Shown here piece by piece: positions 3,001 to 54,110 of a stretch of 64,000 nt of DNA. A program made the position numbers and the translations under genes. The DNA comes from Azolla caroliniana (taxonomy: Eukaryota; Plantae; Polypodiophyta), in the NCBI GenBank assembly GCA_043228905.1, contig JBHGNT010000035.1:1-64000 (forward strand), written 5' to 3'. Positions within the stretch are counted from its first letter, which is position 1; every line of letters begins with the position of its first letter. The notes under the pieces are model-generated. The model ran no database searches and was not told the origin of the DNA. It saw only the letters and a list, made by a program, of their open reading frames with translations.

Positions 3001-5280
3001 TTTACCTACTTGCTCTTGTCAACTCCCACCTCCAATTTGCTAATTTCTTCATGTCGCTCGACCTGATTTTTAAAATCTTGATTTTTTAATTCCATATCAT
3101 AGCTAGCGTTGTTAGCTTCGATTCGCATGTTTGAACACAAAAATCCGATATCACACGAGCCAGATATGAACATTTTAATTTACCTACTTACTCTTGTAAA
3201 CTCCTGCCTCAAATTAATTCCATATCATAGCTAGCGTTGTTAGCTTCAATTCGCATGTTTGAACACAGAAATCCGATATCACACGAGCCAGATATGAACA
3301 TTTTAATTTACCTACTTGCTCTTGTCAACTCCCACCTCAAATTTGCTAGTTTCTCCATGTCTCTCGACGTGGGTTTCAAAATCTTGACTTTTTAATTCCA
3401 TATCATAGCTAGCGTTGTTAGCTTCAATTCGCATGTTTGAACACAGAAATCCGATATCACACGAGCCAGATATGAACATTTTAATTTACCTACTTGCTCT
3501 TGTCAACTCCCACCTCAAATTTGCTAATTTCTTCATGTCGCTCGACCTGAGTTTTAAAATCTTGATTTTTTAATTCCATATCATAGCTAGCGTTGTTAGC
3601 TTCAATTTGCATGTTTGAACACAGAAATCCGATATCACACGAGCTAGATATGAACATTTTAATTTACCTACTTGCTCTTGTCAACTCCCACCTCAAATTT
3701 GCTAATTTCTTCATGTCGCTCGACCTGATTTTTAAAATCTTGATTTTTTAATTCCATATCATAGCTAGCGTTGTTAGCTTCGATTCGCATGTTTGAACAC
3801 AAAAATCCGATATCACACGAGCCAGATATGAACATTTTAATTTACCTACTTACTCTTGTCAACTCCTGCCTCAAATTAATTCCATATCATAGCTAGCGTT
3901 GTTAGCTTCAATTCGCATGTTTGAATACAGAAAGCCGATATCACACGAGCCAGATATGAACATTTTAATTTACCTACTTGCTCTTGTCAACTCCCACCTC
4001 AAATTTGCTAATTTCTTCATGTCTCTCGACGTGGGTTTCAAAATCTTGACTTTTTATTTCCATATCATAGCAAGCGTTGTTAGCTTCAATTCGCATGTTT
4101 GAACACAGAAATCCGATATCACACGAGCCAGATATGAACATTTTAATTTACCTACTTGCTCTTGTCAACTCCCACCTCCAATTTGCTAATTTCTTCATGT
4201 CGCTCGACCTGATTTTTAAAATCTTGATTTTTTAATTCCATATCATAGCTAGCGTTGTTAGCTTCGATTCGCATGTTTGAACACAAAAATCCGATATCAC
4301 ACGAGCCAGATATGAACATTTTAATTTACCTACTTACTCTTGTAAACTCCTGCCTCAAATTAATTCCATATCATAGCTAGCGTTGTTAGCTTCAATTCGC
4401 ATGTTTGAACACAGAAATCCGATATCACACGAGCCAGATATGAACATTTTAATTTACCTACTTGCTCTTGTCAACTCCCACCTCAAATTTGCTAGTTTCT
4501 TCATGTCTCTCGACGTGGGTTTCAAAATCTTGACTTTTTAATTCCATATCATAGCAAGCGTTGTTAGCTTCAATTCGCATGTTTGAACACAGATATCCGA
4601 TATCACACGAGCCAGATATGAACATTTTAATTTACCAACTTGCTCTTGTCAACTCCCACCTCAAATTTGCTAATTTCTTCATGTCGCTCGACCTGATTTT
4701 TAAAATCTTGATTTTTTAATTCCATATTATAGCTAGCGTTGTTAGCTTCGATTCGCATGTTTGAACACAAAAATCCGATATCACACGAGCCAGATATGAA
4801 CATTTTAATTTACCTACTTACTCTTGTCAACTCCTGCCTCAAATTAATTCCATATCATAGCTAGCGTTGTTAGCTTCAATTCGCATGTTTGAACACAGAA
4901 ATCCGATATCACACGAGCCAGATATGAACATTTTAATTTACCTACTTGCTCTTGTCAACTCCCACCTCAAATTTGCTAATTTCTTCATGTCGCTCGACCT
5001 GATTTTTAAAATTTTGATTTTTTAATTCCATATCATAGCTAGCGTTGTTAGCTTCGATTCGCACGTTTGAACACAAAAATCCGATATCACACGAGCCAGA
5101 TATGAACATTTTAATTTACCTACTTACTCTTGTCAACTCCTGGCTCAAATTTGCTAATTTCTTCATGTCTCTCGACGTGAGTGTCCAAATCTTGATTTTT
5201 TAATTCCATATCATAGCAAGCGTTGTTAGCTTCAATTCGCATGTTTGAACACAGAAATCCGATTTTACACGAGCCAAATA
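1..5280. repeat. Homogeneous satellite subfamily with 484/662/1146-bp higher-order repeats built from 178-bp and 128-bp monomers
   Basis: Diagnostic GAGCCAGATATG and CTTGCTCTTGTCAACTCCCACC variants. The 50-bp-deleted monomer (CAAATTAATTCC junction) recurs at ~611, 1095, 1580, 2242, 2727, 3211, 3872, 4357 and 4841. Identical spurious ORFs at 1607, 2753 and 3899 are spaced 1146 = 5x178 + 2x128. Confidence 0.9.
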
Positions 5281-8200
5281 TGAACATTTTAATTTACTAA
5301 CGCGTTGTTCTAAACTCCCTCCTCAAATTTGCTAATTTCTTCATGTCTCTCGACCTCCGTTTGAAAATCTTGATTTTTTAATTCCATATCATAGCTAGTT
5401 TTGTTAGTTTCGATTTACTCAAGGGCTCCTCTCAACTCCCTCCTCAAGTTTGCTAATTTCTTCATATCTCTCGACCTGAGTTTCAAAATCTGGAGTTTTT
5501 AAATCCACATCATAGCTAGCGTTGTTTGCTTCGATGCGCATGTTTGATCACAAAAATCCGTTATGACACGAGCCAGGTATGAACATTTTAATTTACCTAC
5601 TAGCTCTTCTCAACTCCCTTCTCAAATTTGGTAATTTCGTCATGTCTCTCGACCTGAGTTTCAAAATCTTGACTTTTTAATTCCATATCATAACTAGCGT
5701 TGTTAGATTCGATTCGCATGTTTGAACACAAAAATCCGATATCACACGAGCCAGGTAGGAACATTTTAATTTACTCAAGGGCTCCTCTCAACTCCCTTCT
5801 CAAGTTTCCTAATTTCGTCATGTCTCTCGACCTGAGTTTCAAAATCTTGATTTTTTAATTCTATATCATAGCTAGCGTTGTTAGCTTCGATTCACATGTT
5901 TGAACACAAAAATCCGATATGACACGAGCCAGGTATGAACATTTTAATTCACGTACTAGCTCTTCTCCACTCACTCCTCAAATTTTGTAATTTCGTCATG
6001 TCTCTCGACCTGAGTTTCAAAATCTTGATTTTTTAATTCCATATCATAGCTAGCGTTGTTGGCTTCGATTCGCATGTTTGAACACAAAAATCCGATATCA
6101 CACGAGCCAGGTAGGAACATTTTAATTTACTAACGCGCTCTTCTCCACTACCTCCAAAAATTTTCTAATTTCCTCATGTCTCTCGAGCGGAGTTTCAAAA
6201 TCTCGATTTTTTAATTCCATATTAGAGCTAGCGTTGTTAGCGTTGTTTGAACACAGAAATCCGATATCACACGAACCAGGTATGAACATTTTAATTTACT
6301 AACGCGCTCTTCTCCACTACCTCCTCAAATTTGCTATTTTCCTCATGTCTGTCGACCTGAGTTTCAAAATCTTGATTTTTTAATTCCATATCATAGTTAG
6401 CGTTGTTAGCTTCAATTTGCATGTTTGAACACAAAAATCCAATATCACAGGAGCTAGGTATGAACATTTTAATTTACTCAAGAGCTCTTCTCAACTCACT
6501 CCTCAAATTTTGTAATTTCGTCATGTCTCTCGACCTGAGTTTCAAAATCTTGATTTTTTAATTCCATATCAGAGCTAGCGTTGTTAGCTTCGATTCGCAT
6601 GTTTGAACACAAAAATCCGATATCACACGAGCCAGGTAGGTACATTTTAATTTACTCAAGGGCTCCTCTCAACTCCCTTCTCAAGTTTCCTAATTTCGTC
6701 ATGTCTCTCGACCTGAGTTTCAAAATCTTGATTTTTTAATTCTATATCATAGCTAGCGTTGTTAGCTTCGATTCACATGTTTGAACACAAAAATCCGATA
6801 TGACACGAGCCAGGTATGAACATTTTAATTCACGTACTAGCTCTTCTCCACTCACTCCTCAAATTTTGTAATTTCGTCATGTCTCTCGACCTGAGTTTCA
6901 AAATCTTGATTTTTTAATTCCATATCATAGCTAGCGTTGTTGGCTTCGATTCGCATGTTTGAACACAAAAATCCGATATCACACGAGCCAGGTAGGAACA
7001 TTTTAATTTACTAACGCGCTCTTCTCCACTACCTCCAAAAATTTTCTAATTTCCTCATGTCTCTCGAGCGGAGTTTCAAAATCTCGATTTTTTAATTCCA
7101 TATTAGAGCTAGCGTTGTTAGCGTTGTTTGAACACAGAAATCCGATATCACACGAACCAGGTATGAACATTTTAATTTACTAACGCGCTCTTCTCCACTA
7201 CCTCCTCAAATTTGCTATTTTCCTCATGTCTGTCGACCTGAGTCTCAAAATCTTGATTTTTGAATTCCGTATCATAGCTAGCGTTGTTAGCTTCGATTCG
7301 CATGTTTGAACACAAAAATCCGATATGACATGAGCCAGGTATGAACATTTTAATTTACCTACTAGCTCTTCTCAACTCACTCCTCAAATTTTGTAATTTC
7401 GTCATGTCTCTCGACCTGAGTTTCAAAATCTTGATTTTTTAATTCCATATCATAGCTAGCGTTGTTGGCTTCGATTCGCATGTTTGAACACAAAAATCCG
7501 ATATCACACGAGCCAGGTAGGAACATTTTAATTTACTAACGCGCTCTTCTCCACTACCTCCAAAAATTTTCTAATTTCCTCATGTCTCTCGAGCGGAGTT
7601 TCAAAATCTCGATTTTTGAATTCCATATTAGAGCTAGCGTTATTAGCTTCGATTCATATGTTTGAACACAGAAATCCGATATCACACGAACCAGGTATGA
7701 ACATTTTAATTTACTAACGCGCTCTTCTCCACTACCTCCTCCAATTTGCTAATTTCTTCATGTCTCTCGACCTGAGTTTCAAAATCTTGATTTTTTAATT
7801 CCATATAAGAGCTAGCGTTGTTAGCTTCGATTCGCATGTTTGAACACAAAAATACGATATCACACGAGCCACGTATGAACATTTTAATTTACCTACTAGC
7901 TCTTCTCAACGCCCTCCTCAAATTTGTTAATTTCTCCATGTCTGTCGACCTGAGTTTCAAAATCTTGATATTTTAATTCTATATCATAGCTAGCGTTGTT
8001 AGCTTCGATTTGCATTATTTAATTTACTCAAGGGCTCCTCTCAACTCCCTCCTCAAGTTTGCTATTATCGTCATGTCGCTCGACCTGAGTTTCAAAATCT
8101 TGATTTTTTAATTCCATATCATAGCTAGCGTTGTTAGCTTCGATTCGCATGTTTGAACACAAAAATCCGATATCACACAAGCCTGGTATGAACATTTTAA

Positions 8201-11200
8201 TTTACCTAGAGGCTCTTGTCAACTCCCTCCTCAAATTTGTTAATTTCTCCATGCCTCTCGACCTGATTTTTTAATATCATATTAGAGCTAGCGTTGTTAC
8301 CTTCGATTCACATGTTTGAACACAGAAATCCGATATCACACGAGCCAGGTATGAACATTTTAATTTACTAACGCGCTCTTCTCCACTACCTCCTAAAATT
8401 TGCTAATTTCTTCATGTCTGTCGAGCTGAGTTTCAAAATCTTGATTTTTTATTTCCATTTTAGAGCTAGCGTTGTTAGCTTCGATTCACATGTTTGAACA
8501 CAGGAATCAGATATCACACGAGCCAGGTACGAACATTTTAATTTACTAACGCGCTCTTCTCCACTACCTCCTCAAATTTGCTAATTTCTTCATGTCTCTC
8601 GACCTGAGTTTCAAAAGCTTCATTTTTTAATTGTAGATCAGAGCTAGCGTTGTTAGCTTCGATTCGCATGTTTCAACACAGGAATCCGATATCACACAAC
8701 CCTGGTATGAACATTTTAATTTACTAACGCGCTCTTCTCCACTACCTCCTAAAATTTTCTAATTTCCTCATGTCTCTCGAGCGGAGTTTCAAAATCTTGA
8801 TTTTTTAATTCCATATCATAGCTAGCGTTGTTAGCTTCGATTCACATGTTTGAACACAAAAATCCGATATGACACGAGCCAGGTATGAACATTTTAATTT
8901 ACGTACTAGCTCTTCTCCACTCACTCCTCAAATTTTGTAATTTCGTCATGTCGCTCGACCTGAGTTTCAAAATCTTGATTTTTTAATTCCGTATCATAGC
9001 TAGCATTGTTAGCTTCGATTCGCATGTTTGAACACAAAAATCCGATATGACACGAGCCAGGTATGAACATTTTAATTTACCTACTAGCTCTTCTCAACTC
9101 ACTCCTCAAATTTTGTAATTTCGTCATGTCTCTCGACCTGAGTTTCAAAATCTTGATTTTTTAATACCATATCATAGCTAGCGTTGTTGGCTTCGATTCG
9201 CATGTTTGAACACAAAAATCCGATATCACACGAGCCAGGTAGGAACATTTTAATTTACTAACGCGCTCTTCTCCACTACCTCCTAAAATTTTCTAATTTC
9301 CTCATGTCTCTCGACCTGAGTTTCAAAATCTTGATTTTTTAATTCCATATTAGAGCTAGCGTTATTAGCTTCGATTCGTATGTTTGAACACAGAAATCCG
9401 ATATCACACGAACCAGGTATGAACATTTTAATTTACTAACGCGCTCTTCTCCACTACCTCCTAAAATTTGCTAATTTCTTCATGTCTCTCGAGTTGAGTT
9501 TCAAAATTTTGATTTTTTAATTCCATATTAGAGGTAGCGTTGTTAGCTTCGATTCACATGTTTGAACACAGGAATCCGATATCACACGAGCCAGGTATGA
9601 ACATTTTAATTTACTAACGCGCTCTTCTCCACTACCTCCTCAAATTTGCTAATTTCTTCATGTCTCTCGACCTGAGTTTCAAAATCTTGATTTTTTAATT
9701 GTAGATCAGAGCTAGCGTTGTTAGCTTCGATTCGCATGTTTCAATACAGGAATCCGATATCACACGAGCCTGGTATGAACATTTTTATTTACTAACGCGC
9801 TCTTCTCCACTACCTCCTAAAATTTGCTAATTTCTTCATGTCTCTCGAGCTGAGTTTCAAAATCTTGATTTTTTAATTCCATATTAGAGGTAGCGTTGTT
9901 AGCTTCGATTCACATGTTTGAACACAGGAATCCGATATCACACGAGCCAGGTATGAACATTTTAATTTACTAACGCGCTCTTCTCTACTACCTCTTCAAA
10001 TTTGTTAATTTCTCCATGTCTGTGGACCTGAGTTTCAAAATCTTGATATTTTAATTCCATATCAGAGCTAGCGCTGTTAGCTTCGATTCACATGTTTGAA
10101 CACAAGAATCCGATATCACACGAGCCAGGTATGAACATTTTAATTTACTCAAGGCCTCCTCTTAACTCCCCTGTCAAGGTTACTAATTTCGTCATGTCTC
10201 TCGACCTGAGTTTCAAAATCTTGATTTTTTAATTCCATATCATAGCTTGCGTTGTTACCTTCCAATCGCATGTTTGAACACATAAATCCGATATGACACG
10301 AGCCAGGTATGAACATTTTAATTTACCTACTAACTCTTCTCAACTCACTCCTCAAATTTAGTAGTTTCGTCATGTCTCTCGACCTGAGTTTCAAAATCTT
10401 GATTTTTTAATTCCATATCATAGCTAGCGTTGTTACCTTCGATTCGCATGTTTGAACACATAAATCCGATATGACACGAGCCAGTTATGAACATTTTAAT
10501 TTACCTACTAGCTCTTCTCAACTCACTCCTCAAATTTCATAATTTCGTCGTGTCTCTCGACCTGAGTGTCAAAATCTTGATTTTTTAATTCCATATCATA
10601 GCTAGCGTTGTTAGATTCGATTCGCATGTTTGAACACAAAAATCCGATATCACACGAGCTAGCTATGAACATTTTAATTTGCGTACTAGCGCTTGTCAAC
10701 TACCTCCTCAAATTTACTAATTTCTTCATGTCTCTCGACCTAAGTTTCAAAATCTTGATATTTTAATTCTATATCATAGCTAGCGTTGTTAGCTTCGATT
10801 TGCATGTTTTAATTTACTCAAGGGCTCCTCTCAACTCCCTCCTCAAGTTTGCTATTATCGTCATGTCGCTCGACCTGAGTTTCAAAATCTTAATTTTTTA
10901 ATTCCATATCATAGCTAGCGTTGTTAGCTTCGATTCGCATGTTTGAACACAAAAATCCGATATCACATGAGCCTGGTATGAACATTTTAATTTACCTAGA
11001 GGCTCTTGTCAACTCCCTCCTCAAATTTGTTAATTTCTCCATGTCTCTCGACCTGAGTTTCAAAATCTTGATTTTTTAATATCATATTAGAGCTAGCGTT
11101 GTTACCTTCGATTCACATGTTTGAACACAGAAATCCGATATCACACGAGCCAGGTATGAACATTTTAATTTACTAACGGGCTCTTCTCCACTACCTCCTA

Positions 11201-14200
11201 AAATTTGGTAATTTCTTCATGTCTCTCGAGCTGTGTTTCAAAATATTGATTTTTTAAGTCCATATCAGAGCTAGCGTTGTTAGCTTCGATTCACATGTTT
11301 TCACACAAAAATACGATATCACACGAGCGACGTATGAACATTTTAATTTACCTAGACGCTCTTGTCAACTCCCTCCTCAAATTTGTTAATTTCTCCTTGT
11401 CGCTCGACCTGAGTTTCAAAATGTTGATTTTTTAATTCCATATTAGAGCTAGCGCTGTTAGCTTCGATTCACATGTTTGAACACAGAAATCCGATATCAC
11501 ACGAGCCAGGTATGAACATTTTAATTTACTAACGGGCTCTTCTCCACTAACTCCTAAAATTTGCTAATTTCTTCATGTCTCTCGAGCTGTGTTTCAAAAT
11601 CTTGATTTTTTAATTCCAAATTAGAGCTAACGTTGTTAGCTTCGATTCGCATGTTTGAACAAAGAAATCCGATATCACACGAGCCTGGTATGAACATTTA
11701 ACTTTACTAACGCGCTCTTCTCCACTACCTCTTCAAATTTGCTAATTTCTTCATGTCTCTCGACCTGAGTTTCAAAATCTTGATTTTTGAATTCCATATT
11801 AGAGCTAGCGTTGTTAGCTTCGATTCCCATGTTTGAACACAGAAATCCGATATCATACGAGCCAGGTATGAACATTTTAATTTACTAACGGGCTCTTCTC
11901 AACTACCTCCTAAAATTTGCTAATTTCTTCATGTCTCTCGAGCTGAATTTGAAAATCTTGATTTTTTAATTCCATATCAGAGCTAGTGCTGTTAGCTTCG
12001 ATTCACATGTTTGAACACAAGAATCCGATATCACACGAGCCAGGTATGAACATTTTAATTTACTCAAGGGCTCCTCTCAACTCCCTTGTCAAGGTTGCTA
12101 ATTTCGTCATGTCTCTCGACCTGAGTTTTAAAATCTTGATTTTTTAATTCCATATCATAGCTAGCGTTGTTACCTTCGATTCGCATATTTGAACACATAC
12201 ATCCGATATGACACGAGCCAGGTATGAACATTTTAATTTACCTACTAGCTCTTCTCAACTCACTCCTCAAATTTAGTAGTTTCGTCATGTCTCTCGACCT
12301 GAGTTTCAAAATCTTGATTTTTTAATTCCATATCATAGCTAGCGTTGTTAGCTTCGATTCGCATGTTTGAACACAAAAATCCGATATCACACGAGCTAGC
12401 TATGAACATTTTAATTTGCGTACTAGCGCTTGTCAACTACCTCCTCAAATTTGCTAATTTCTTCATTTCTCTCGACCTAAGTTTCAAAATCTTGATTTTT
12501 TAATTCAATATCAGCGCTAGCGTTGTTATCTTCGATTTGCATGTTTTAATTTACTCAAGGGCTCCTCTCAACTCCCTCCTCAAGTTTGCTATTTTCGTCA
12601 TGTCTCTCGACCTGAGTTTCAAAATCTTGATTTTTGAATTCCATATCAGTGCTAACGTTGTTAGCTTCGATTCGCATGTTTGAACACAAAAATCTGATAT
12701 CACACGAGCCACGTATGAACATTTTAATTTACTAACGCGCTCTTCTCCACTACCTCCTCAAATTTGCTAATTTCTTGATGTCCTTCGACCTGAATTTGAA
12801 AATCTTGATTTTTTAAATCCATATTAGAGCTAGCGCTGTTAGCTTCGATTCACATGTTTGAACACAAGAATCCGATATCACACGAGCCAGGTATGAACAT
12901 TTTAATTTACTCAAGGGCTCCTCTCAACTCCCTTGTCAAGGTTGCTAATTTCGTCATATCTCTCGACCTGTGTTTCAAAATCTTGATTTTTTAATTCCAT
13001 ATCATAGGTAGCGTTGTTACCTTCGATTCGCATGTTTGAACAAATAAATCCGATATGACACGAGCCAGGTATGAACATTTTAATTTACCTACTAGCTCTT
13101 CTCAACTCACTCCTCAAATTTGGTAATTTCGTCATGTCTCTCGACCTGAGTTTCAAAATCTTGATTTTTTAATTCCATATCATAGCTAGCGTTGTTAGCT
13201 TCGATTCGCATGTTTGAACACAAAAATCCGATATCACACGAGCTAGCTATGAACATTTTAATTTGCGTACTAGCGCTTGTCAACTACCTCCTCAAATTTG
13301 CTAATTTCTTCATTTCTCTCGACCTAAGTTTCAAAATCTTGATTTTTTAATTCAATATCAGCGCTAGCGTTGTTATCTTCGATTTGCATGTTTTAATTTA
13401 CTCAAGGGCTCCTCTCAACTCCCTCCTCAAGTTTGCTATTTTCGTCATGTCTCTCGACCTGAGTTTCAAAATCTTGATTTCTGAATTCCATATCAGTGCT
13501 AACGTTGTTAGCTTCGATTCGCATGTTTGAACACAAAAATCTGATATCACACGAGCCACGTATGAACATTTTAATTTACTAACGCGCTCTTCTCCACTAC
13601 CTCCTCAAATTTGCTAATTTCTTGATGTCCTTCGACCTGAATTTGAAAATCTTGATTTTTTAAATCCATATTAGAGCTAGCGCTGTTAGCTTCGATTCAC
13701 ATGTTTGAACACAAGAATCCGATATCACACGAGCCAGGTATGAACATTTTAATTTACTCAAGGGCTCCTCTGAACTCCCTTGTCAAGGTTGCTAATTTCG
13801 TCATATCTCTCGACCTGTGTTTCAAAATCTTGATTTTTTAATTCCATATCATAGGTAGCGTTGTTACCTTCGATTCGCATGTTTGAACAAATAAATCCGA
13901 TATGACACGAGCCAGGTATGAACATTTTAATTTACCTACTAGCTCTTCTCAACTCACTCCTCAAATTTGGTAATTTCGTCATGTCTCTCGACCTGAGTTT
14001 CAAAATCTTGATTTTTTAATTCCATATCATAGCTAGCGTTGTTAGCTTCGATTCGCATGTTTGAACACAAAAATCCGATATCACACGAGCTAGCTATGAA
14101 CATTTTAATTTGCGTACTAGCGCTTGTCAACTACCTCCTCAAATTTGCTAATTTCTTCATGTCTCTCGACCTAAGTTTCAAAATCTTGATTTTTTAATTC

Positions 14201-16780
14201 AATATCAGCGCTAGCGTGGTGAGCTTCGATTCGCATGTTTGAACACAAAAATCCGATATCACACGAGCCAGGTATAAACATTTTAATTTACCTACTAGCG
14301 CTTGTGAACTCCCTCCTAAAATGTGCTAATTTCTTCATGTCTCTCGACCTGAGTTTCAAAATCTTGATTTTTTAATTCCATATTAGAGCTAGCGTTGTTA
14401 GCTTCGATTCACATGTTTGAACACGAAAATCCGATATCATACGAGCCAGGTACGAATATTTTAATTTACTCAAGGGCTCCTCTCAACTCCCTCCTCAAGT
14501 TTGCTAATTTCGTCATGCCTCTGGACCTGAGTTTCAAAATCTTGATTTTTTAATTCCATATCATAGCTTGCGTTGTTAGCTTCGATTCGCATGTTTGAAC
14601 ACAAAAATCCGATATCACACGAGCCTGGTATGAACATTTTAATTTACCTAGAGGCTCTTGTCAACTCCCTCCTCAAATTTGTTAATTTCTCCATGCCTCT
14701 CGACCTGAGTTTCAAAATCTTGATTTTTTAATATCATATTAGAGCTAGCGTTGTTACCTTCGATTCACATGTTTGAACACAGAAATCCGATATCACACGA
14801 GCCAGGTATGAACATTTTAATTTACTCAAGGGCTCCTCTCAACTCCCTCCTCAAGTTTCCTAATTTCGTCATGTCGCTCGACCTGAGTTTCAAAATCTTG
14901 ATTTTTTAATTCCATATCATAGCTAGCGTTGTTAGCTTCGATTCGCATGTTTGAACACAAAAATCCGATATGACACGAGCCAGGTATGAACATTTTAATT
15001 TACCTAATAGCTCTTCTCAACTCACTCCTCATATTTTGTAATTTCGTCATGTCTCTCGACCTGAGTTTCAAAATCTTGATTTTTTAATTCCATATCATAG
15101 CTAGCGTTGTTAGCTTCGATTCGCATGTTTGAACACAAAAATCCGATATCACACGAGCCAGGTAGGAACATTTTAATTTACTCAAGGGCTCCTCTCAACT
15201 CCCTCCTCAAGTTTGCTATTTTCGTCATGTCTCTCGACTTGAGTTTCAGAATCTTGAGTTTTTAAATCCACATCATAGCTAACGTTGTTAGCTTTGATTC
15301 GCATGTTTGAACACAAAAGTCCGATATCACACGAGCCAGGTATGAACATTTTAATTTACCTCCTAGCTCTTCTCAACTCCATCCTCAAATCTGGTAATTT
15401 CGTCATGTCTCTCGACCTAAGTTTCAAAATCTTGATATTTTAATTCCATATCATAGCTAGCGTTGTTAGCTTCGATTTGCATGTTTGAACACAAAAATCC
15501 GATATCACACGAGCCAGGTATGAACATTTTAATTTACTCAAGGGCTCCTCTCAACTCCCTTGTCAAGGTTGCTAATTTCGTCATGTCTCTCGACCTGAGT
15601 TTTAAAATCTTGATTTTTTAATTCCATATCATAGCTAGCGTTGTTACCTTCGATACGCATGTTTGAACACATAAATCCGATATGACACGAGCCAGGTATG
15701 AACATTTTAATTTACGTACTAGTTCTTCTCAACTCACTCCTCAAATTTGGTAATTTCGTCATGTCTCTCGACCTGAGTTTCAAAATCTTGATTTTTTAAT
15801 TCCATATTATAGCTAGCGTTGTTAGCTTCGATTTGCATGTTTGAACACAAAAATCCGATATCACACGAGCCAGGTATGAACATTTAAATTTACTCAAGGG
15901 CTCCTCTCAACTCCCTTGTCAAGGTTGCTAATTTCGTCATGTCTCTCGACCTGAGTTTCAAAATCTTGATTTTTTAATTCTATATCATAGCTAGCGTTGT
16001 TAGATTCGATTCGCATGTTTGAACACAAAAATCCGATATCACACGAGCCAAGTAGGAACATTTAAATTTACACAATATCATAGCTAGCGTTGTTAGCTTC
16101 GATTCGCATGTTTGAACACAAAAATCCGATATGACACGAGCCAGGTATGAACATTTTAATTTACGTACTAGTTCTTCTCCACTCACTCCTCAAATTTGGT
16201 AATTTCGTCATGTCTCTCGACCTGAGTTTCAAAATCTTGATTTTTTAATTCCATATTATAGCTAGCGTTGTTAGCTTCGATTTGCATGTTTGAACACAAA
16301 AATCCGATATCACACGAGCCAGGTATGAACATTTAAATTTACTCAAGGGCTCCTCTCAACTCCCTTGTCAAGGTTGCTAATTTCGTCATGTCTCTCGACC
16401 TGAGTTTCAAAATCTTGATTTTTTAATTCCATATCATAGCTAGCGTTGTTACCTTCGATTCGCATGTTTGAACACATAAATCCGATATGACACGAGCCAG
16501 TTATGAACATTTTAATTTACCTACTAGCTCTTCTCAACTCACTCCTCAAATTTCATAATTTCGTCGTGTCTCTCGACCTGAGTGTCAAAATCTTGATTTT
16601 TTAATTCCATATCATAGCTAGCGTTGTTAGATTCGATTCGCATGTTTGAACACAAAAATCCGATATCACACGAGCCAGGTAGGAACATTTTAATTTACTC
16701 AAGGGCTCCTCTCAACTCCCTCCTCAAGTTTGCTATTTTCGTCATGTCGCTCGACTTGAGTTTCAAAATCTTGATTTTTT
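1..16780. repeat. 178-bp tandem satellite array, left block (probable centromeric/pericentromeric satellite)
   Basis: The AA of the TGTTTGAA landmark falls at 1, 179, 357 and 535 (period 178). Head-to-tail, one orientation, with occasional deleted monomers. Centromeric role is inferred from monomer size and HOR organisation only. Confidence 0.97.
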
Positions 16781-16789
16781 CATATTAAT

Positions 16790-17295
16790 AGACTATATAA
16801 TGTCTTATACGAGGAGTGCGGGCAGGATACTTCTTTGGCTGTGATTAGTGTTATTTGGTTAACTATTTGAGGATTTAGGGTTTGGGTGTGAAGGTTTGGG
16901 GTATATGGGTTAACTGAGGTTTTTGGGTTAAATATCTTAAGGGTTTAGGGTTTTGTTCGGAGGGTTTAGGGCATATGGGTAAAATATCTGAGGGTTTAGG
17001 GTTTGGTAGACTATATGATGTATTGCACGAGGAAAGCGGGCACGATACTTATTTAGGCTACGACTAGTGTTATTAGGTTAACTATTCTTAGGGTTTATGG
17101 GTTTGTTCTGAGGGTTTAGGGTATATGGGTTAAAATATTCTGAGGGTTTAGGGTAGTGTGTGCAAAAGTAAAGGTATTAAGGATTGGTAGGTTTAGGGTT
17201 TTTGTGGTAAGGGGAGATATGTTTGGAGAGGTATGATGATGAGGGTATGGGTTGGCGGGGATATAATGTGTTAGGGTTATTAGTTTAGGGTTGCG
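16790..17295 (-). repeat. PLE 3'-terminal region: two diverged ~218-bp direct repeats with interspersed TTTAGGG telomere-like motifs
   Basis: AGACTATAT..ACGAGGA..GCGGGCA.GATACTT..TAGTGTTATT.GGTTAACTATT starts at 16790 and 17008. AGGGTTTAGGG at 16940, 16961, 16991, 17111 and 17143, with further TTTAGGG near 16874, 17192 and 17284. Confidence 0.85.
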
Positions 17296-17455
17296 GGTAT
17301 TGGGTAGGTTAAAGATTAAGGGAAAGAGGGGGGAGTGCCACGTTTTACTTAGTGGGAATGAAATAGCATATATATTATTGAAAGCACAACTAACCACAAC
17401 ATAAAAACAATAGACACTTGAGAAGAAAATATATATTGATCAAATATATATTAAT

Positions 17456-17514
17456 ATGACCTATGTAGCAAACTAGTTTCGCTCATATATGGAGCTCATC
17501 AGTGCTTAGGTCAT
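17456..17514 (-). ncRNA. Minimal type I hammerhead ribozyme
   Basis: Minus strand reads AUGACCUA-AGCA-CUGAUGA-GCUC-CAUAUAU-GAGC-GAAA-C-UA-G-UU-UGCU-ACA-UAGGUCAU. Both core boxes present; stem II GCUC/GAGC; stem I AGCA/UGCU plus AUGACCUA/UAGGUCAU; very short stem III within the palindrome AAACUAGUUU. Predicted cleavage after GUU, between 17471 and 17470. Confidence 0.9.
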
Positions 17515-17857
17515 TTTCGAGTACAAAGGTAAGTTTATATAGGTTTGTGGTAAGGGGGGTGTAAGATGAGTGGTGGACAAGAGTGATAAATGTGAAAAGA
17601 AGTGAGGAGTATGGGAGGGAGTGGTGTAACACGGTGATAAGGGGGCAAGATATGATTTTGTAAAGGGAGGGAGTGGGTATCATGAGTTTGATAGAGATAA
17701 GTGGGTAACTAGAGGGTATAATAATGGTGATAAGTGGGTGACCGGAGGGTATGATAAGTGAGGGGAGGGGTGTGTATATGTGTGTGATGGTGGCTAGTAC
17801 GAGGTAAAGATGTGGGTGAAAAACGAGGGGAATACGAATTTAATAGTTATGGGGAAT

Positions 17858-17860
<3 letters not shown>

Positions 17861-17901
<41 letters not shown>

Positions 17902-18240
17902 TTAACTAATGAGAAGAGAGTGTGAAAAAAGGTGAGAAAAGAGAGAGGGAGAGAGAGAGAGAGAGAGAGAAAAGAAAAAAAGAAAGAAAGAAAGAAGAGA
18001 GACGTAGAGAAAAGAAAAGGTAGAGAGGGAGAAAAAAGGAAAAGAAAAAAGAGGTGAGTTTTAGAGTGTAGAGAGGGAGAAAAGTAAAGGTAGAGAGAGA
18101 GGAAAAAGAAATGATTTAGAGAGGGAGAAAGGTAAAGGTAGAGAGAGAAAGAGAAGGGGAGGGAAGGAGGAGATAGAGATAGAGAAAGGGAAAGTTAAGA
18201 GAGAAGAAATGTGAAGGTAGAGAGGGAGAAGATAGGGGGA
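17861..18240. repeat. (GA)19 microsatellite and polypurine tract (polypyrimidine on the PLE sense strand) in the PLE 3' UTR
   Basis: Perfect GA run at 17861-17898, a second run near 17950-17970, then almost pure A/G sequence to ~18240. Confidence 0.9.
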
Positions 18241-18307
18241 GATCCTCACGTGGTAAATATAGGGAGATAAAACTTGTGGTTTAAAAAAATAAAAATATGG
18301 AGAGGAC

Positions 18308-20285
18308 TTAGTGTGGATCTATAGTAATGTTTTTTGTGTTGACTAGTGAAGAGTGTAGATTTTTAGATTTAGTCCAACAAATTATTGGTTTGGGGATGTG
18401 TTGTAGTAGAGGGTCTTCTTGGAGGTTTAAGTGTAGGCTAGTAAGGGTTTCTTTTATTCCTAGATTAGGGGCTTGGTGTGTGAATTTTAGTTTAAAGATT
18501 ATGGGTGTCGGGGTTTGGTTAATGGTTTTGTTTGAGAGGAGAGTTGGTCTAAGGGAATAGGGGTGTTTTTTTAATATATTGAGGATAAAGTGTGTAGGGT
18601 ATCCTCGTGCTCGTAGTCTCTTAAAAAATAGTTGTTGCATTTTTAAATAACCTTGGGTTGTACTTTCTCTAATAATGTATCTTTTAAGTTCGTTCGAGAG
18701 GAAGCTTTTTTTGACGTGGATAGGATGTGTCGAGGTGAAGGGTATGTATTGGTAAGTATTAAGTTCTTTTTGAAAACAATTAAAGTTGAAATTATTATTA
18801 GCGAGGTTTATCCAAAGGTCGAGAAAAGGAAGTTTAGTGAGAGAGGTTTGGATGGTCAGTTTAATGGAGTTTTGAGTGGTAATACTATAGAAATTTAGGT
18901 AGTCTAAGAGTTGTGTTTTCGTACCGCTCCATACACCAAAGGCATCATCAATATATCTCGTGAAATAAAATAAATGGGGAGATGGGTTGGAATTCTCGAG
19001 GTATGACAAAAAAAGGCAAGCATATACTACGGAAAAATTGCTTCCCATGGCCGTGCCTTTAATTTGTTGATAGATTTGGTTATTAAATTTAAGGAAGTGA
19101 TATTCTAAGGTTAAGGCGCTGAGAGTATAGATGAGGTTGGCTTTTTGTTTTGAGAAATGGGGGGTAATTAGGTGTTTTAGGGCAAGTAGTCCTAGTTTTG
19201 GTGGAATACTCGGGTAGAGGGATTCTACGTCAAATGAAAAGATGAAGCTATTGGGTGGTGTGGTAAGGTTTTCTAGGGATTGTACTAAGGAGAATGAGTC
19301 TCTAAGGTATTGTTTTTGTTGTAGGAGTATGGGGAGGAGTTGGTGGTGTAGCCACTTAGAAGTTTGTTCAAATAACGAACCGTTGTAAGAACAAATAGGC
19401 CTATAGCCAATGGGTTCTTTGTGTACTTTGGGTAGGAAGTACATGGTGGGGACTCGGTATTCGTTGGATGGTTTGTGTAAGATGAATTTTATTTCTATGA
19501 GGGAGAGGGTTCCTAGGTGTTGATTCATTAATGTTTTTAATCTATGTAGGAGTTCTTCTAAGGGGAAGGTATCTACGGGTTTGTAAGTGGATGTATCGGA
19601 TAGGTGAGCTAGGGCTTTATCTAGGTATGTTTGTTTGTTTAAGACACAAACACCTACATTTTTGTCTGCGGGGAGGATGATAATGTGTTTATTGCTTTTA
19701 AGGCTTTTTAAGGCTTGTAGTAGGTGTAGTGGAATGTGTTTAGTGGGTAGGTTTGTATTATGGAGTTTTATGGTGAGGAGATTAAGGTGTTTATGAAGTA
19801 TGTCTTCTAACGGTGGGTATTGTGTAGGGGGGTTCCAAGAGGGGTTGGGTAGTTTAAAGGGGTTGTGTGGGGCGGAGGAGTCGTCTTGAAAGAAATGTCT
19901 AAGTCTAAGGGATCTACTAAGGTTATGGAATTCTTGAAGAATAGAAGTGGAGGTGGGGGGGGGGGGAGGGAGGTATAAACTTAAGACCTAGGTTAAGGAG
20001 TTTAATTTCTGACTTGCTAAGGGTATGTGTAGAAAGGTTGTGGATTTTACTACTATGAGGGGGACTAAAGGGTGTTGTAAGGGGTTTCCAAAATTTATAT
20101 CTAAGTTTCTTTTTACGTGTTTTTTTTGTATGTGGTCTAAAGGGGATTCTATGTGACATGTTACCTAGCCAATTAGAGGAATCTAGGGGGGTAGAGTTAC
20201 CATTAACAAAATACCACATACGTTTAGTTGGGTGTACGGCGTGTCTAAAACGTCGGTTTGATCTTTTAGCACGCCGTACTAAACG
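18308..20285 (-). CDS. PLE reverse transcriptase (ORF2, ~660 aa if repaired), broken by a 1-nt frameshift in a G12 run at 19955-19966
   Basis: The supplied 406-aa ORF frame stays open upstream of Met 19528 up to the G run (..TSTSILQEFHNLSRSLRLRHFF..ALKSLKSNKHIIILPADKNVGVCVLNKQTYLDKALAHLSDTSTY..). The 98-aa ORF 19923-20219 supplies the PLE N-terminal motif and its frame is open back past 20285. Removing one G joins the two. Confidence 0.85.
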
Positions 20286-20291
20286 TTTTTT
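20234..20291 (-). promoter_or_regulatory. Putative programmed -1 ribosomal frameshift signal, ORF1 to RT
   Basis: ORF1 ends CCA AAA AAC GTT TAG, giving heptamer A_AAA_AAC (20291-20285) in the correct phase. A 5-nt spacer precedes a hairpin GUACGGCGUG-CUAAAA / UUUUAG-A-CACGCCGUAC (20279-20234). The -1 frame is the RT N-terminal frame. Confidence 0.8.
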
Positions 20292-21429
20292 GGCCGGTGG
20301 AGGTTGTGAGTGGTGGGAAGTGTGATGTGAGAAGAATACATAGGGGATTTAGGGTGACTAGTTGAGGGGTGGATACAACTTGTGGATGGTTTGGTAGAGG
20401 TGGTGTAGGGAGGATGTTGGGTATGGGTTGATTGGGTGTAGTGGTTAGGGATGTAGGGGTTAAGAGAGGTGTATGAGGGGTTGGGGAAGGCTAAGGGTAT
20501 TTGGGAAAATAGGGGAGGGTTTATGTTGTGATTGTGGGTAGTTTCTTTAAACCAAGGGGGGCTTAGTGTGTGTGAATAGTTGTGAGAGGGGGGGGTAGGA
20601 AAGGTATTTCTAGAATTATTAGGAGGAGTATAAAAAGAAAACGAAAGAGAAGGAGAGTTAGGGGTAGGGTGAGCGTTAGGATTTACACAGTGGGTATGGG
20701 TAGGAGGGTAAGGATGAGTACTGTTTTGGGGTTGAAGGTCTTCGGGGGAGGGATACAAGGGGGGAGCGATGAAGCTGAATGGGGTGTGTTGGGGCTGGTG
20801 GTGAATCTGATGATAGGTATCTCGCGAATGGTGGAGTGGTGTGTCCTCCTCAAGTGGTGGCTGGAGCTGATAATTGGTGGTGGTTATGTTATGAATTGCC
20901 GTCTCGTATGTTGTCCGAGAGGGAGGTTGATGTTGGAGAGGGTGAGAAAACGGCGGGGGTCGAGGCGTCGGCAGAAGAGGCTGCTGTAATTTGCAGGGCT
21001 GGTCGCATGGTGGCAGCGGCGACGGCGGTGGCGGCGGCGGCTGCGGCTGAAGATCATTGTTGGGTTGGCGTTGATTTATATGTTGATGTCGATGCTGATA
21101 TGAGTGCATTTGGTGTTCTCTTTCCGTCATATATCTCCAGGGCTCGTGGTGTTGCGGTTGCGGAGGCGGCGGCTGAAAACCATTGTTAGGTTGGCCTCGG
21201 TTTTGATGCCGGTAAAGGTATACTTGTTGTTTGTTTTCAGGAGGAAATGGAGAGGAGAAGCTATGGATAGTGTTTGCTTTGGGCTGAAATGGGGCGGAAG
21301 GTATATGGCGGAGTTGCATTCGTTGGAGAAGTACGGGTTCGTTGAAACCAATAAATTTAACTATTGGTTCGTATTGATTGGAATCTAAATTATGGCGCGG
21401 GGTAATTTCGTGTGTTGTTATGTTATAAG
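20279..21429 (-). CDS. PLE ORF1, Pro/Gln/His/Thr-rich low-complexity protein, 5'-truncated
   Basis: Open frame of ~383 codons inside the insert. The first ~15 codons of the supplied 398-aa ORF (21430-21475) are satellite sequence, so the true start is missing. It ends exactly at the frameshift signal. Confidence 0.7.
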
Positions 21430-24400
21430 TGTTTGAACACAAAAATCCGATATCACACGAGCCAGGTATGAACATTTTAATTTACCTACTAGATCTTCTC
21501 AACTCCCTCCTCGAATTTGGTAATTTCGTCATGTCTCTTGACCTGAGTTTCAAAATCTTGATTTTTTAATTCCATATCATAACTAGCATTGTTAGCTTCG
21601 ATTCGCATGTTTGAACACAAAAATCCGATATCACACGAGCCAGGTATGAACATTTTAATTTACTCAAGGGCTCCTCTCAACTCCCTGGTCAAGGTTGCTA
21701 ATTTCGTCATGTCTCTCGACCTGAGTTTCAAAATCTTGATTTTTTAATTCCATATCATAGCTAGCGTTGTTACCTTCGATTCGCATGTTTGAACACATAA
21801 ATCCAATATGACACAAGCCAGGTATGAACATTTTAATTTACCTACTAGCTCTTCTCAACTCACTCCTCAAATTTAGTAATTTCGTCATGTCTCTCGACCT
21901 GAGTTTCAAAATCTTGACTTTTTAATTCCATATCATAGCTAGCGTTGTTAGATTCGATTCGCATGTTTGAACACAAAAATCCGATATCACACGAGCCAGG
22001 TAGGAACATTTTAATTTACTCAACAGCTCCTCTCAACTCCCTCCTCAAGTTTGCTATTTTCGTCATGTTTCTCGACCTGAGTTTCAAAATCTTGATTTTT
22101 TAATTCCATATCATAGGTAGCGTTGTTAGCTTCGATTCGCATGTTTGAACACAAAAATCCGATATCACACGAGCCAGGTAGGAACATTTTAATTTACTCA
22201 AGGGCTGCTCTCAACTCCCTCCTCAAGTTTGCTATTTTCGTCATGTCTCTCGACCTGAGTTTCAAAATCTTGATTTTTTAATTCCATATCATAGCTAGCG
22301 TTGTTAGCTTCGATTCGCATGTTTGAACACAAAAATCCGATATCACACGAGCCAGGTATGGACATTTTAATTTACTCAAAGGCTCCTCTCAACTCCCTCC
22401 TCAAGTTTGCTAATTTCTTCATATGTCTCGACCTGAGTTTCAAAATCTTGATTTTTCAATTCCATATCATAGCTAGCGTTGTTAGCTTCGATTCGCATGT
22501 ATGAACACAAAAATCCGATATCATACGAGCCAGGTACGAACATTTTAATTTACTCAAGGGCTCCTCTCAACTCCCTCCTCAAGTTTGCTAATTTCGTCAT
22601 GCCTCTCGACCTGAGTTTCAAAATTTTTATTTTTTAATTCCATATCATAGCTTGCGTTGTTAGCTTCGATTCGCATGTCTGAACACAAAAATCCGATATC
22701 ACACGAGCCAGGCATGAACATTTTAATTTACCTACTAGCTCTTCTCAACTCCCTCCTCGGATTTCGTAATTTCGTCATGTCTCTCGACCTGAATTTCAAA
22801 ATCTTGATTTTTTAATTCCATATCAAAACTAGCGTTGTTAGCTTCGATTCGCATGTTTCAACACAAAAATCCGATATCACACGAGCCAGGTATGAACATT
22901 TTAATTTACTCACGGTCTCCTCTCAACTCCCTCCTCAAGTTTGCTAATTTCTTCATATCTCTCGACTTAAGTTTCAAAATCTTGAGTTTTTAAATCCACA
23001 TCATAGCTAGCGTTGTTAGGTTTGGTTCGCATATTTGAACACAAAAATCCTATATCACACTCGCCAGGTATGAACATTTTAATTTACCTACTAGCTCTTC
23101 TCAACTCACTCCTCAATTTGGTAATTTCGTCATGTCTCTCGACCTGAGTTTCAAAATCTTGATTTTTTAACTCCATATCATAGCTAGCGTTGTTAGATTC
23201 GATTCGCATGTTTGAACACAAAAATCCGATATCACACGAGCCAGGTATGAACATTTTAATTTACCTACTAGCTCTTCTCAACTCACTCCTCGAATTTAGT
23301 AATTTCGTCATGTCTCTCGACCTGAGTTTCAAAATCTTGATTTTTTAATTCCATATCAAAACTAGCGTTGTTAGCTTCGATTCGCATGTTTGAACACATA
23401 AATCCGATATCAGACGAGCTAGGTATGAACATTTTAATTTACTCAAGGGCTCCTCTCAACTCCCTCCTCAAGTTTGCTAATTTCTTCATATCTCTCGACC
23501 TGAGTTTAAAATCTTGAGTTTTTAAATCCACATCATAGCTAGCGTTGTTAGCTTCGATTCGCATATTTGAACACAAAAATCCGATATCACACTCGCCAGG
23601 TATGAATATTTTAATTTACCTACTAGCTCTTCTCAACTCACTCCTCAAATTTGGTAATTTCGTCATGTCTCTCGACCTGAGTTTCAAAATCTTGATTTTT
23701 TAACTCCATATCATTGCTAGCGTTTGTAGATTCGATTCACATGTTTGAACACAAAAATCCGATATCACACGAGCCAGGTAGGAACATTTTAATTTACTCT
23801 AGGGGTCCTCACAACTCCCTCTTCAAGTTTGCTAATTTCGTCATGTCTCTCGATGTGAGTTTCAAAATCTTGATTTTTTAATTCCATATCGTAGCTAGCG
23901 TTGTTAGATTCGATTCGCATGTTTGAACACAAAAATCCGATTTCACACGAGCCAAGTATGGACATTTTAGTTTACTCAAGGGCTCCTCTCAACTCCCTCC
24001 TCAAGTTTGTTAATTTCTTCATATCTCTCGACATGAGTTTCAAAATCTTGAGTTTTTAAATCCACATCATAGCTAGCGTTCTTAGCTTCGATTCGCATGT
24101 TTGAATACAAAAATCCGATATCACACTCGCCAGGTATGAACATTTAAATTTACCTACCTACTCTTCTCAACTCCCTCCTCAAATTTGGTAATTTCGTCAT
24201 ATCTCTCGACCTAAGTTTGAAAATCTTGATTTTTTAATTCCTTATTATAGCTAGCGTTGTTAGCTTCGATTCGAATGTTTGAACACATAAATCCGATCTG
24301 ACACTCGCCAGGTATGAACATTTAAATTTACCTATTAGCTCTTCTCAACTCACTCCTCAAATTTGGTAATCTCCTCATGTCTCTCGACCTGAGTTTCAAA

Positions 24401-48400: not shown

Positions 48401-48799
48401 GACCTGAGTTTCAAAATCTTGATTTTTTAATTCCATATCAAAACTAGCGTTGTTAGCTTCGATTCGCATGTTTGAACACAAAAATCCGATATCACACGAG
48501 CCAGTTATGAACATTTTAATTTACTCAAGGGCTCCTCTCAACTCCCTCCTCAAGTTTGCTAATTTCTTCATATCTCTCGACCTAAGTTTAAAATCTTGAG
48601 TTTTTAAATCCACATCATAGCTAGCGTTGTTAGCTTCGATTCGCATATTTGAACACAAAAATCCGATATCACACTCGCCAGGTATGAATATTTTAATTTA
48701 CCTACTAGCTCTTCTCAACTCACTCCTCAAATTTGGTAATTTCGTCATGTCTCTCGACCTGAGTTTCAAAATCTTGATTTTTTAACTCCATATCATTGC
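21430..48799. repeat. 178-bp tandem satellite array, central block, with multi-monomer HORs and local duplications
   Basis: Period 178 (e.g. 22148 to 22326). Rare variants recur at near-integer monomer multiples: 2489 (14-mer), 1065 (6-mer), 1958 (11-mer), 2670 (15-mer), 4092 (23-mer). Confidence 0.97.
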
Positions 48800-49255
48800 T
48801 GTCAGGAACGCTACCTAGGCGGAGAAGGAATTAGTACTAAAAGAAGGATTAGTACAATTGTTGAGAACAGTACTAAGACAGAGAAGGATTAGTACTATGA
48901 GAGGTGTAGAACGTTGAGAGAAGGAACGAGTGAGAGGGAGAGAGAGAGAGAGAGAGAGAGAATGATGATACGAAGGATATATGTATTAGGTGAAGGAAAA
49001 TATACAATAACAGCTAGAAGGCTTAAGACTGGCGTTGAACCGATTTGGTTCGAACTAATGCCTTGCGCCTCCTTTTATAGTGTCTTCAGGAATACTCCTG
49101 AAGTTTCTAGAATGTTCCAGAGAAATCTGGAATATACATCCATTTCCTAATAAAATATAAATGAAAATAATATACTTCGAATTACAATGTATAATATAAC
49201 GGTAAAGACTCGACCCATGTAACAACAGGTTATGGGTTCGAGTCTAGTTATGACA
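48800..49255 (-). repeat. 3' LTR
   Basis: Direct repeat of 54111-54566, adjacent to the PPT. Contains a (GA)n tract and three short GAAGGA(A)TTAGTAC repeats. Confidence 0.97.
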
Positions 49256-54013: not shown

Positions 54014-54096
54014 TTTGATAGGGAGAATAAGGGTATTAGTATGAAGAGAAGGAGGATAAAAGGGAAGGAAGAGGGAGAGAAAGACCAGATGGAGGA

Positions 54097-54110
54097 AAAT
54101 CGGTTCAAAC
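54097..54110 (-). promoter_or_regulatory. Non-tRNA (self-priming, Tf1-type) primer binding site
   Basis: After the 5' LTR the minus strand reads GTTTGAACCGATTT, with no TGG start. TTGAACCGATTT is exactly complementary to AAATCGGTTCAA at 54357-54346 within the LTR. Confidence 0.85.

Follow-up and report, generated by a model that had tools for sequence, protein, structure and literature searches.

How does a retroelement that encodes no endonuclease come to lie inside a satellite array? The question is raised by positions 16781–21429 of a 64,000-nt stretch of DNA from the fern Azolla caroliniana (assembly GCA_043228905.1, contig JBHGNT010000035.1, positions 1–64,000 of the forward strand), which was analysed at its full length and is called the window here. 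At these positions a Penelope-like element (PLE) interrupts a 178-bp satellite. Its two junctions and the accompanying loss of target DNA point to insertion independent of an endonuclease, probably primed at a two-ended double-strand break in the satellite.

Endonuclease-less (EN−) PLEs are the closest transposon relatives of telomerase and are thought to prime on any exposed DNA 3′ end. To our knowledge, examples at the sequence level away from telomeres are scarce, and among plants only the Selaginella element has been described. EN− PLEs occur at the telomeres of rotifers, fungi, protists and Selaginella, with deprotected telomeres or double-strand breaks as primers (PMC3846280, PMC8557442, PMC12477314); double-strand-break priming had been proposed for them earlier (PMC3846280). 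A 2026 centromere atlas records Penelope elements in satellite arrays only for chordates, where they depend on GIY-YIG, and we found no description in the literature of an EN− PLE inside a plant satellite. The locus described here is a clean internal example. Both of its junctions are readable against a periodic target, so that the primer, the resection (40 bp) and the annealing site can be read off directly.

An endonuclease-less element in a satellite array

The window is an array of the 178-bp satellite, in one orientation throughout, with two foreign inserts. Tandem Repeats Finder (TRF) has the array stop at 16780 and restart at 21430, so the limits given for the PLE by an earlier interpretation of the letters alone (the sequence-only reading) are exact. 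GC skew rises from −0.25 to +0.4/+0.6, a change confined to the insert. Neither a second copy of the PLE nor a telomere array is present in the 64-kb window. The parts of the insertion and its flanks, running from the 5′ to the 3′ side of the element's sense strand, are as follows.

21430–63997, unstranded: 178-bp satellite, right flank, broken by a Ty3/gypsy element at 48800–54566 (TRF; higher-order repeat (HOR) register test)
21430–21432, minus strand: 5′ junction, with a 3-bp microhomology, ACA, common to element and satellite
16781–21429, minus strand: 5′-truncated EN− PLE, equal to positions 1475–6113 of a 6113-bp unit and 98.8% identical to the metagenome contig L004 over 4659 bp
20279–21429, minus strand: C-terminal remnant of open reading frame 1 (ORF1), low-complexity and P/Q/H/N-rich, about 383 codons, conserved helical domain absent
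18308–20219, minus strand: reverse transcriptase (RT) ORF with N-terminal PLE motifs, RT domain and thumb/helix-turn-helix (HTH), ending without an endonuclease
19955–19966, minus strand: C12 homopolymer run, the site of the RT frameshift (C11 or C4TC6 in other copies)
17860–18300, minus strand: CT-rich, low-complexity 3′ untranslated region, about 450 nt
17533–17542, minus strand: TATA box CTATATAAAC, conserved across five families, with the hammerhead match about 18 nt and its CUGAUGA core about 30 nt downstream
17449–17515, minus strand: hammerhead ribozyme of type I, its helix III a 6-nt palindrome, ACUAGU; predicted cleavage after U17471
16880–17296, minus strand: telomere-like block with eight CCCTAAA motifs
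16809–16823, minus strand: conserved 15-nt motif GCCCGCACTCCTCGT, with a second, diverged copy at 17027–17041
16781–16788, minus strand: first 8 nt (TTAATATG) of a 23-nt inter-unit filler
16765–16778, minus strand: 3′ junction homology, where satellite AAAATCAAGATTTT matches element AAAATCATGATTTT (unit positions 5–18)
1–16780, unstranded: 178-bp satellite, left flank, on the 3′ side of the element's sense strand (TRF; HOR register test)

The window copy is a dead-on-arrival insertion, both 5′-truncated and frameshifted. Its 4.6 kb lack the first 1,474 bp of the unit, including the conserved domain of ORF1. An upstream ORF1, which the sequence-only reading had reported, is therefore present only as its C-terminal ~383 codons, and the idea that the insertion brought a full telomere-attachment toolkit does not hold for this copy.

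The minus-strand ORF at 18308–19528 matches RVT_1. The frameshifted RT was queried both as separate ORF pieces and through an intact natural protein, P0001 (636 aa; domains: the PLE-specific DUF8422 (PF28514), RVT_1 (PF00078) and HTH_animal (PF26215)), to which it is 99% identical apart from its single frameshift. A 406-aa piece of the RT found 197 PLE homologues, the best being P0001 at 99%, and the GIY-YIG-bearing ones among them are 30–34% identical. Named relatives are proteins from Cryptomeria, Ginkgo and Selaginella, at 37–47% identity. The N-terminal motifs, RT core and thumb/HTH that define a PLE-type RT were all found; a PDB sequence search with the RT gave no match at E ≤ 1.

No endonuclease accompanies this RT. 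Pfam detected no GIY-YIG in the RT, in the 875-aa full-length ORF1 or in the small downstream ORFs, and it did detect the domain in the positive control, P0072. This search of full-length copies had been proposed along with the original claim of an RT that ends after the thumb, and its outcome agrees with that claim. PF01541 was likewise absent from the relatives of at least 37% identity, all 356–658 aa long (636-aa query, 350–1113 aa length window). Nor is there an N-terminal GIY-YIG of the Chlamys/Naiad type, as full-length copies consist of ORF1 (helical plus low-complexity) and then an RT that starts MWYF.

In a maximum-likelihood tree of 99 RTs, built without reference Athena or Coprina RTs or a TERT outgroup, the window family groups with Selaginella, Ginkgo and Cryptomeria in a clade of 29 rows that has 100% support. 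This land-plant EN− clade stands apart from the clades with GIY-YIG proteins, sponge, oomycete and the fungus Microbotryum. Judged from its sequence, the element is an EN− PLE of the land-plant clade that includes the telomere-associated Selaginella element. The family is new, as had been suspected, but its kind is not: plant EN− PLEs had already been described for Selaginella (Gladyshev & Arkhipova 2007, as cited in PMC12477314, PMC4209133 and PMC8557442), in the same clade.

Related loci comprised 25 ENA metagenome contigs, those of the PLE families being 3.5–7.3 kb long, together with one organelle-like contig of 11.6 kb and a scaffold from Selaginella. The window family forms head-to-tail tandems with a unit of 6,113 bp, made up of ORF1 (875 aa), the RT (636 aa) and a tail of about 1.5 kb, with the next ORF1 directly after it; the Selaginella locus has the identical order of parts at a repeat spacing of 7.45 kb. 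ORF1 contains an all-helical domain of about 200 aa that is conserved as far as Selaginella and is matched by only 48 representatives among 1.84 billion proteins. A fold search of the PDB with the AlphaFold model of this domain (pLDDT 76) returned only generic long-helix matches (E > 0.4). The ORF1 coding sequence also holds runs of the CCCTAA hexamer, up to seven perfect units long, which encode (Asn-Pro)n (L008:1086–1360, L012:4120–4360 and L004:1116–1380) and lie in the part absent from the window copy; the ORF1 of L008 has 28 CCCTAA and 0 TTAGGG.

Junctions of the insertion

The satellite on either side of the PLE has the same orientation and a common 356-bp higher-order (dimer) register: the right flank matches the left at 96.3% identity with an offset of four monomers and at 89% with an offset of three. 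The same-orientation flanks noted in the sequence-only reading are thus parts of one continuous array in one HOR register. Across the insertion exactly 40 bp of a satellite monomer are absent, without duplication, and no target-site duplication (TSD) was found at the PLE.

At the 3′ junction, the window copy ends ...ATAGTCTATTAATATG on its sense strand, and the crossover is ambiguous over about 16765–16783. The pairing of AAAATCATGATTTT with AAAATCAAGATTTT is the sole 13/14 match of 14-mers among 6113 × 178 (about 1.09 million) unit-by-monomer pairs, and no gapped alignment of the whole unit to the satellite scores better than the one at this junction. Past ...TATTAATATG, tandem copies go on GAAAATCATGATTTT, whereas the window goes on AAAAAATCAAGATTTT, which is pure satellite. 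The exact element 14-mer occurs as a satellite variant at window positions 117–130.

At the 5′ junction, the copy joins the satellite directly through the ACA microhomology, with no telomeric repeats at its end. The three marks of break-primed insertion, namely the lack of a TSD, target deletion and junction microhomology, all occur at this locus, and the junction anatomy fits the earlier suggestion that elements of this family patch breaks in satellite DNA.

A second satellite insertion of the family, in contig L002, has the same orientation. It is truncated at unit position 2150 with a TGT microhomology (about L002:297), and its 5′ junction lies 7 bp from that of the window copy in satellite phase. 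Separately, a circularly collapsed k119 unitig (L023, ERZ27227308) is broken at unit position 1470, at most 5 nt from the truncation point of the window copy (1472–1475). Such a break is expected if the same satellite–element junction branches the assembly graph of that sample, and is to this extent indirect evidence of the junction.

Telomere association and inter-unit filler

The link to telomeres is a property of the family, seen at its 5′ ends and between the units of its closest sister, and at this level the telomere connection of the sequence-only reading is borne out. In contig L001, a copy truncated at unit position 533 is preceded by CCCAAACCCTAAACCCTAAACCCT (L001:616–638, with a CCTA overlap with the element) and then by unique DNA. 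This stretch, (CCCTAAA)~3, represents telomeric repeats added to the truncated 5′ end, the hallmark published in PMC3846280.

In all families the segment between units is bounded by ...ATAGTCTA at the unit 3′ end and ACTATGGAGG at the start of ORF1. What lies between these ends differs. In the window family it is a satellite-like 23-mer, TTAATATGGAAAATCATGATTTT, found in 8/8 contigs from eight samples. In the closest sister family, P0002 (RT 86% identical), telomeric repeats, ATCTAAACCCTAAACCCCAAAT, lie between the head-to-tail units, and in a third family ACCCTAAACCCTA stands 10 nt ahead of the ATG. In two others, the unit 3′ end and the ORF1 start have nothing between them. The inter-unit DNA is telomeric in relatives and satellite-like in the window family, and in chains built by successive priming, the position of the filler is that of the DNA end that primed the upstream unit.

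Probable break-primed insertion and its alternatives

In an insertion primed at a double-strand break, the template would be read-through RNA from a head-to-tail tandem, because the window copy holds the first 8 nt of the filler, and a G content of only 8% would leave this RNA nearly unstructured. The satellite 3′ end exposed by resection (plus strand, ...AAAATCTTGATTTTTT-3′) would anneal to it just past the unit end, at a 14-nt near-perfect complement inside the satellite-like 23-mer. The element's RT would then extend the primer through the tail, with its telomere-like block and hammerhead, through the RT gene and through part of ORF1, and synthesis would halt 1,474 nt before the unit 5′ end. 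Joining of the cDNA to the other break end via the 3-bp microhomology would leave 40 bp of satellite lost and no TSD. Annealing and extension of this kind would give the exact T6|CAT join, with one T bulged. The anatomy, the junction sequences, the lack of an endonuclease, the telomere association of the family and its clade placement are shown; what we infer in this scheme is the sequence of events, that the template was RNA, and which end served as primer.

Several lines of evidence favour this account. First, neither this copy nor full-length copies nor the clade yielded an endonuclease. Second, the copy shows a 40-bp loss and no TSD, unlike the Ty3/gypsy element in the same array, which has a clean 5-bp TSD. 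Third, the conduct of the family matches the published description of EN− PLEs (PMC3846280). The same account is favoured by the unique 13/14 match at the 3′ junction, by the truncated 5′ ends of the window copy and of L002 with their 3-bp microhomologies, by the 8 nt of filler in the window copy and by the weak predicted folding of the sense RNA.

Other points weigh against it. There is a single 3′ junction in satellite (n = 1), and the junctions are read from the assembled sequence. Reverse transcription begins near the 3′ end, which constrains the position on the element side; with the RNA end fixed and only the satellite phase free, the fair chance of the observed match is about 1/178 to 1/50, not 10^−6. 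The pairing requires one T in the T6 run of the primer to bulge out or form a wobble pair with G. If the hammerhead is efficient, it would strip the RNA 3′ end of its tail, and only uncleaved RNA could have been the template. Finally, later recombination between filler and satellite could yield an identical 3′ junction.

This last point leads to the alternative that survives best, in which two or more head-to-tail units once lay at the site and recombination or microhomology-mediated repair between the filler and downstream satellite removed the downstream unit or units. All 8 tandem contigs have the filler, which is homologous to the satellite; its first 8 nt persist in the window copy; and the 1.2% divergence of this copy from the tandem units would have left time for rearrangement. 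Such a deletion is nonetheless an extra event, the 5′ junction and target loss would still demand an endonuclease-independent origin, and the exact T6|CAT join is the prediction of simple primer extension. We consider secondary deletion unlikely, if still the most serious rival, and prefer the annealing of filler RNA to a satellite break over the later loss of a downstream unit.

Satellite arrays misassemble easily, and the sole defect of the RT is a homopolymer length difference of the kind typical of long-read error, as might be expected if PLE-containing reads had been chimerically joined into the array. Both junctions, however, lie in one monomer, 40 bp apart and in the same HOR register, and both have microhomologies that are biologically typical. 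The independent short-read contig L002 also joins the family to satellite in the same orientation, and in the k119 unitig L023 the break lies at most 5 nt from where the window copy is truncated. An assembly artefact is very improbable.

Trans-mobilisation occurs in other retroelements. Insertion in trans by the nuclease of an endonuclease-bearing (EN+) PLE or of a long interspersed nuclear element (LINE) finds no direct support at this locus and is hardly credible, given the lack of a TSD, the target deletion, the long junction homology, the absence of EN+ PLEs among relatives of at least 37% identity and the finding that Athena is not cross-mobilised by EN+ Penelope (PMC3846280). Terminal addition is the canonical mode of EN− PLEs (PMC3846280), and L001 has a telomere-repeat cap, but it is scarcely tenable that the window copy healed a former chromosome end to which satellite was later joined distally by fusion or translocation, because its 5′ end has no telomeric repeats and the distal flank keeps the dimeric HOR register with only 40 bp gone, as random fusion would not.

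A further proposal goes beyond break priming at this one site: through an exchange of its 3′ annealing tag, the 23-mer standing where sister families have a short telomeric stretch (CCCTAAA ×2), the family would have moved from telomeres to a satellite niche. Read-through RNAs ending in the 23-mer would then anneal to resected satellite breaks as a telomeric tag would to G-overhangs, and a G-depleted, almost structure-free RNA would help annealing. We offer this as speculation that is, at present, doubtful. Should the satellite-like tag prove functional, it would show how the capture of a few flanking bases can shift a retroelement that primes by annealing into another genomic niche, a result relevant to the origin of telomerase-like templating and to the repair and colonisation of satellite arrays. 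The features that merit follow-up are this junction tag and the depletion of G, which is a separate trait of the subclade.

Depletion of G on the sense strand

The sense strand has 8% G in the window copy and 8–13% across the PLE loci L001–L012 and L016–L025, falling to 4.9% at third codon positions. G makes up 17–20% of the Ty3/gypsy element in the array and of more distant PLEs, those of Selaginella and the P0012 family. Depletion is restricted to a subclade of nine rows (nine families) whose stem branch is long. Folding of the sense RNA is predicted at −0.084 kcal/mol/nt, compared with −0.239 for the neighbouring Ty3/gypsy element, and the RNA is predicted to be nearly structure-free except in the hammerhead region, at the start of the insert (the ORF1 remnant) and in parts of the RT gene.

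We considered and rejected recent G-to-A hypermutation as the source of this bias. Other copies keep intact ORFs; the bias, though most marked at codon position 3, also shifts amino acids; it is common to families that are only 62–75% identical; and the 26 substitutions private to the window copy show no excess of G>A.

Ribozyme, promoter-like motifs and telomere-like block

The hammerhead matches Rfam HH9 at 23 bits, under the gathering score of 52. Covariation nevertheless supports the ribozyme that had been recognised in the sequence-only reading: in a six-family alignment, its three helices reach 97% paired cells with 6 compensatory pairs, compared with 29–40% in slid controls. It recurs in every family, about 30 nt downstream of the TATA box. 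Helix III is a 6-nt palindrome across families (ACUAGU, ACAUGU or ACCGGU), which points to action as a dimer, as described for PLE hammerheads (PMC4209133). The same source treats hammerheads of plant PLEs, that of the Selaginella element included.

At 17533–17542 of the window, as in L005, L012, L015 and L017, a conserved TATA box (TATATAAA/TATATATA) precedes the hammerhead core by about 30 nt. Its conservation there suggests that transcripts may begin at the ribozyme, in which case it would cut away its own 5′ leader. At the other end of the tail, the motif GC(C/T)CGCACTCCT(C/T)G lies 45–75 nt upstream of the ORF1 ATG in all families (L005:3799, L012:3095, L017:4586 and L019:6094). No conserved RNA structure is predicted in the last 100 nt before ORF1, where only the primary motif is shared; this conserved 15-nt motif may be a 3′-end promoter for the downstream unit.

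Following the hammerhead in sense order, the window copy has an AT-rich stretch and then the CCCTAAA block, around whose motifs lie two repeats of about 148 bp (16789–16928 and 17007–17154). The telomere-like 3′ motifs of the sequence-only reading far exceed chance: the last 650 nt hold 8 CCCTAAA against 0.22 expected (about 36-fold), a count reached by 0/2000 shuffles, and none in the TTTAGGG orientation. In the window copy they stand singly or in pairs, as degenerate units, and form no terminal array. A CCCTAAA block lies between hammerhead and ORF1 in the P0001, P0002 and P0003 families and in Selaginella; the P0010 family has none in this interval (L005:3660–3850, L007:3030–3205), so the block is not universal in the clade. 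The same P0010 family has the longest CCCTAA runs in ORF1, yet no telomere-like block in its tail.

The satellite array and its Ty3/gypsy insertion

The second insert in the array is an intact Ty3/gypsy chromovirus on the minus strand (48800–54566), with gag at 52823–54013 and pol, which has a C-terminal chromodomain, at 49248–52796. Its long terminal repeats (LTRs; 457 bp) are 100% identical and its TSD is 5 bp (ATTGC, 48795–48799), so the insertion is very recent and insertions of the integrase type look normal in this array. Named matches to the polyprotein (fungi, fish and Closterium) are 40–50% identical, and the close ones are metagenome proteins only; the fungal-like sequence appears compatible with the Tcn1 clade of chromoviruses of non-seed plants (PMC2864245).

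The centromeric site supposed in the sequence-only reading is a conjecture for this array, as the 64 kb hold nothing but satellite and the two transposons. The array itself is heterogeneous. Window positions 1–5400 are built of a 484-bp higher-order unit (178+128+178) at 93–97% identity, and beyond 5.4 kb there are 178-bp monomers, some shortened to 135 or 93 bp, with the 356-bp dimer register around the PLE. Two PLE 5′ junctions and the Ty3/gypsy TSD fall in or beside one 40–47-bp section of the 178-bp monomer. With three events (n = 3) this clustering is not significant; it could mark an accessible or fragile part of the repeat.

Among the related loci, one ENA contig (L013, 11.6 kb, 61×) is organelle-like, with ndhG-ndhI-ndhA including a group II intron and five tRNA genes, and it holds, at 461–1435, a 324-aa PLE RT fragment with 57% identity to the window RT. 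The contig may represent a mitochondrial genome with acquired plastid and nuclear DNA, or be chimeric.

Comparison with known systems

The Drosophila elements HeT-A and TART resemble the window family in their head-to-tail arrays, strong strand composition bias and possible 3′-end promoter for the downstream unit. They differ in being non-LTR (LINE-like) elements without a hammerhead, in a host without telomerase. The 13/14-nt priming homology at the window locus is far longer than in typical endonuclease-independent cases of LINE-1. LINE-1 belongs to another retroelement class and normally has an endonuclease, which the window family lacks. Its endonuclease-independent insertions at double-strand breaks (PMC1920257) otherwise share with the window copy the lack of a TSD, target deletion, 5′ truncation and junction microhomology.

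Closer to hand are the Chlamys and PLE-X1 elements of green algae and Selaginella, which are likewise PLEs of the green lineage, some of them with canonical hammerheads (PMC8557442). Chlamys has an N-terminal GIY-YIG, and PLE-X1 has a CxC motif and targets 28S rDNA (PMC8557442); the window family has neither an N-terminal endonuclease nor an rDNA context. Athena and the Terminons of bdelloid rotifers and Coprina of fungi and protists are more alike: they lack an endonuclease, have an upstream ORF1 with long helices, carry reverse-complement telomeric repeats and a hammerhead, show telomeric additions at their truncated 5′ ends and form head-to-tail chains (PMC8557442, PMC3846280, PMC12477314). 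Unlike in Athena and Coprina, the telomere-like block of the window family lies 150–650 nt from the hammerhead, not adjacent to it, and the documented insertion is internal. The fungal Microbotryum element falls in a clade separate from that of the plant EN− PLEs in the tree of 99 RTs.

The nearest known system is the EN− PLE of Selaginella moellendorffii, which shares the 100%-supported clade of the window family and has the same parts in the same order: a hammerhead with a palindromic helix III, a CCCTAAA block, an ORF1 of about 900 aa with the helical domain and an RT of about 600 aa without endonuclease. The two RTs are only 37–40% identical, and the RT gene has 19.6% G in Selaginella as against 8–9% in the window family. 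Pure (CCCTAAA)n closes the Selaginella copy, whereas the window family adds about 100 nt and the satellite-like 23-mer after the block; the Selaginella copy lies beside telomeric repeats, and the window copy lies inside satellite.

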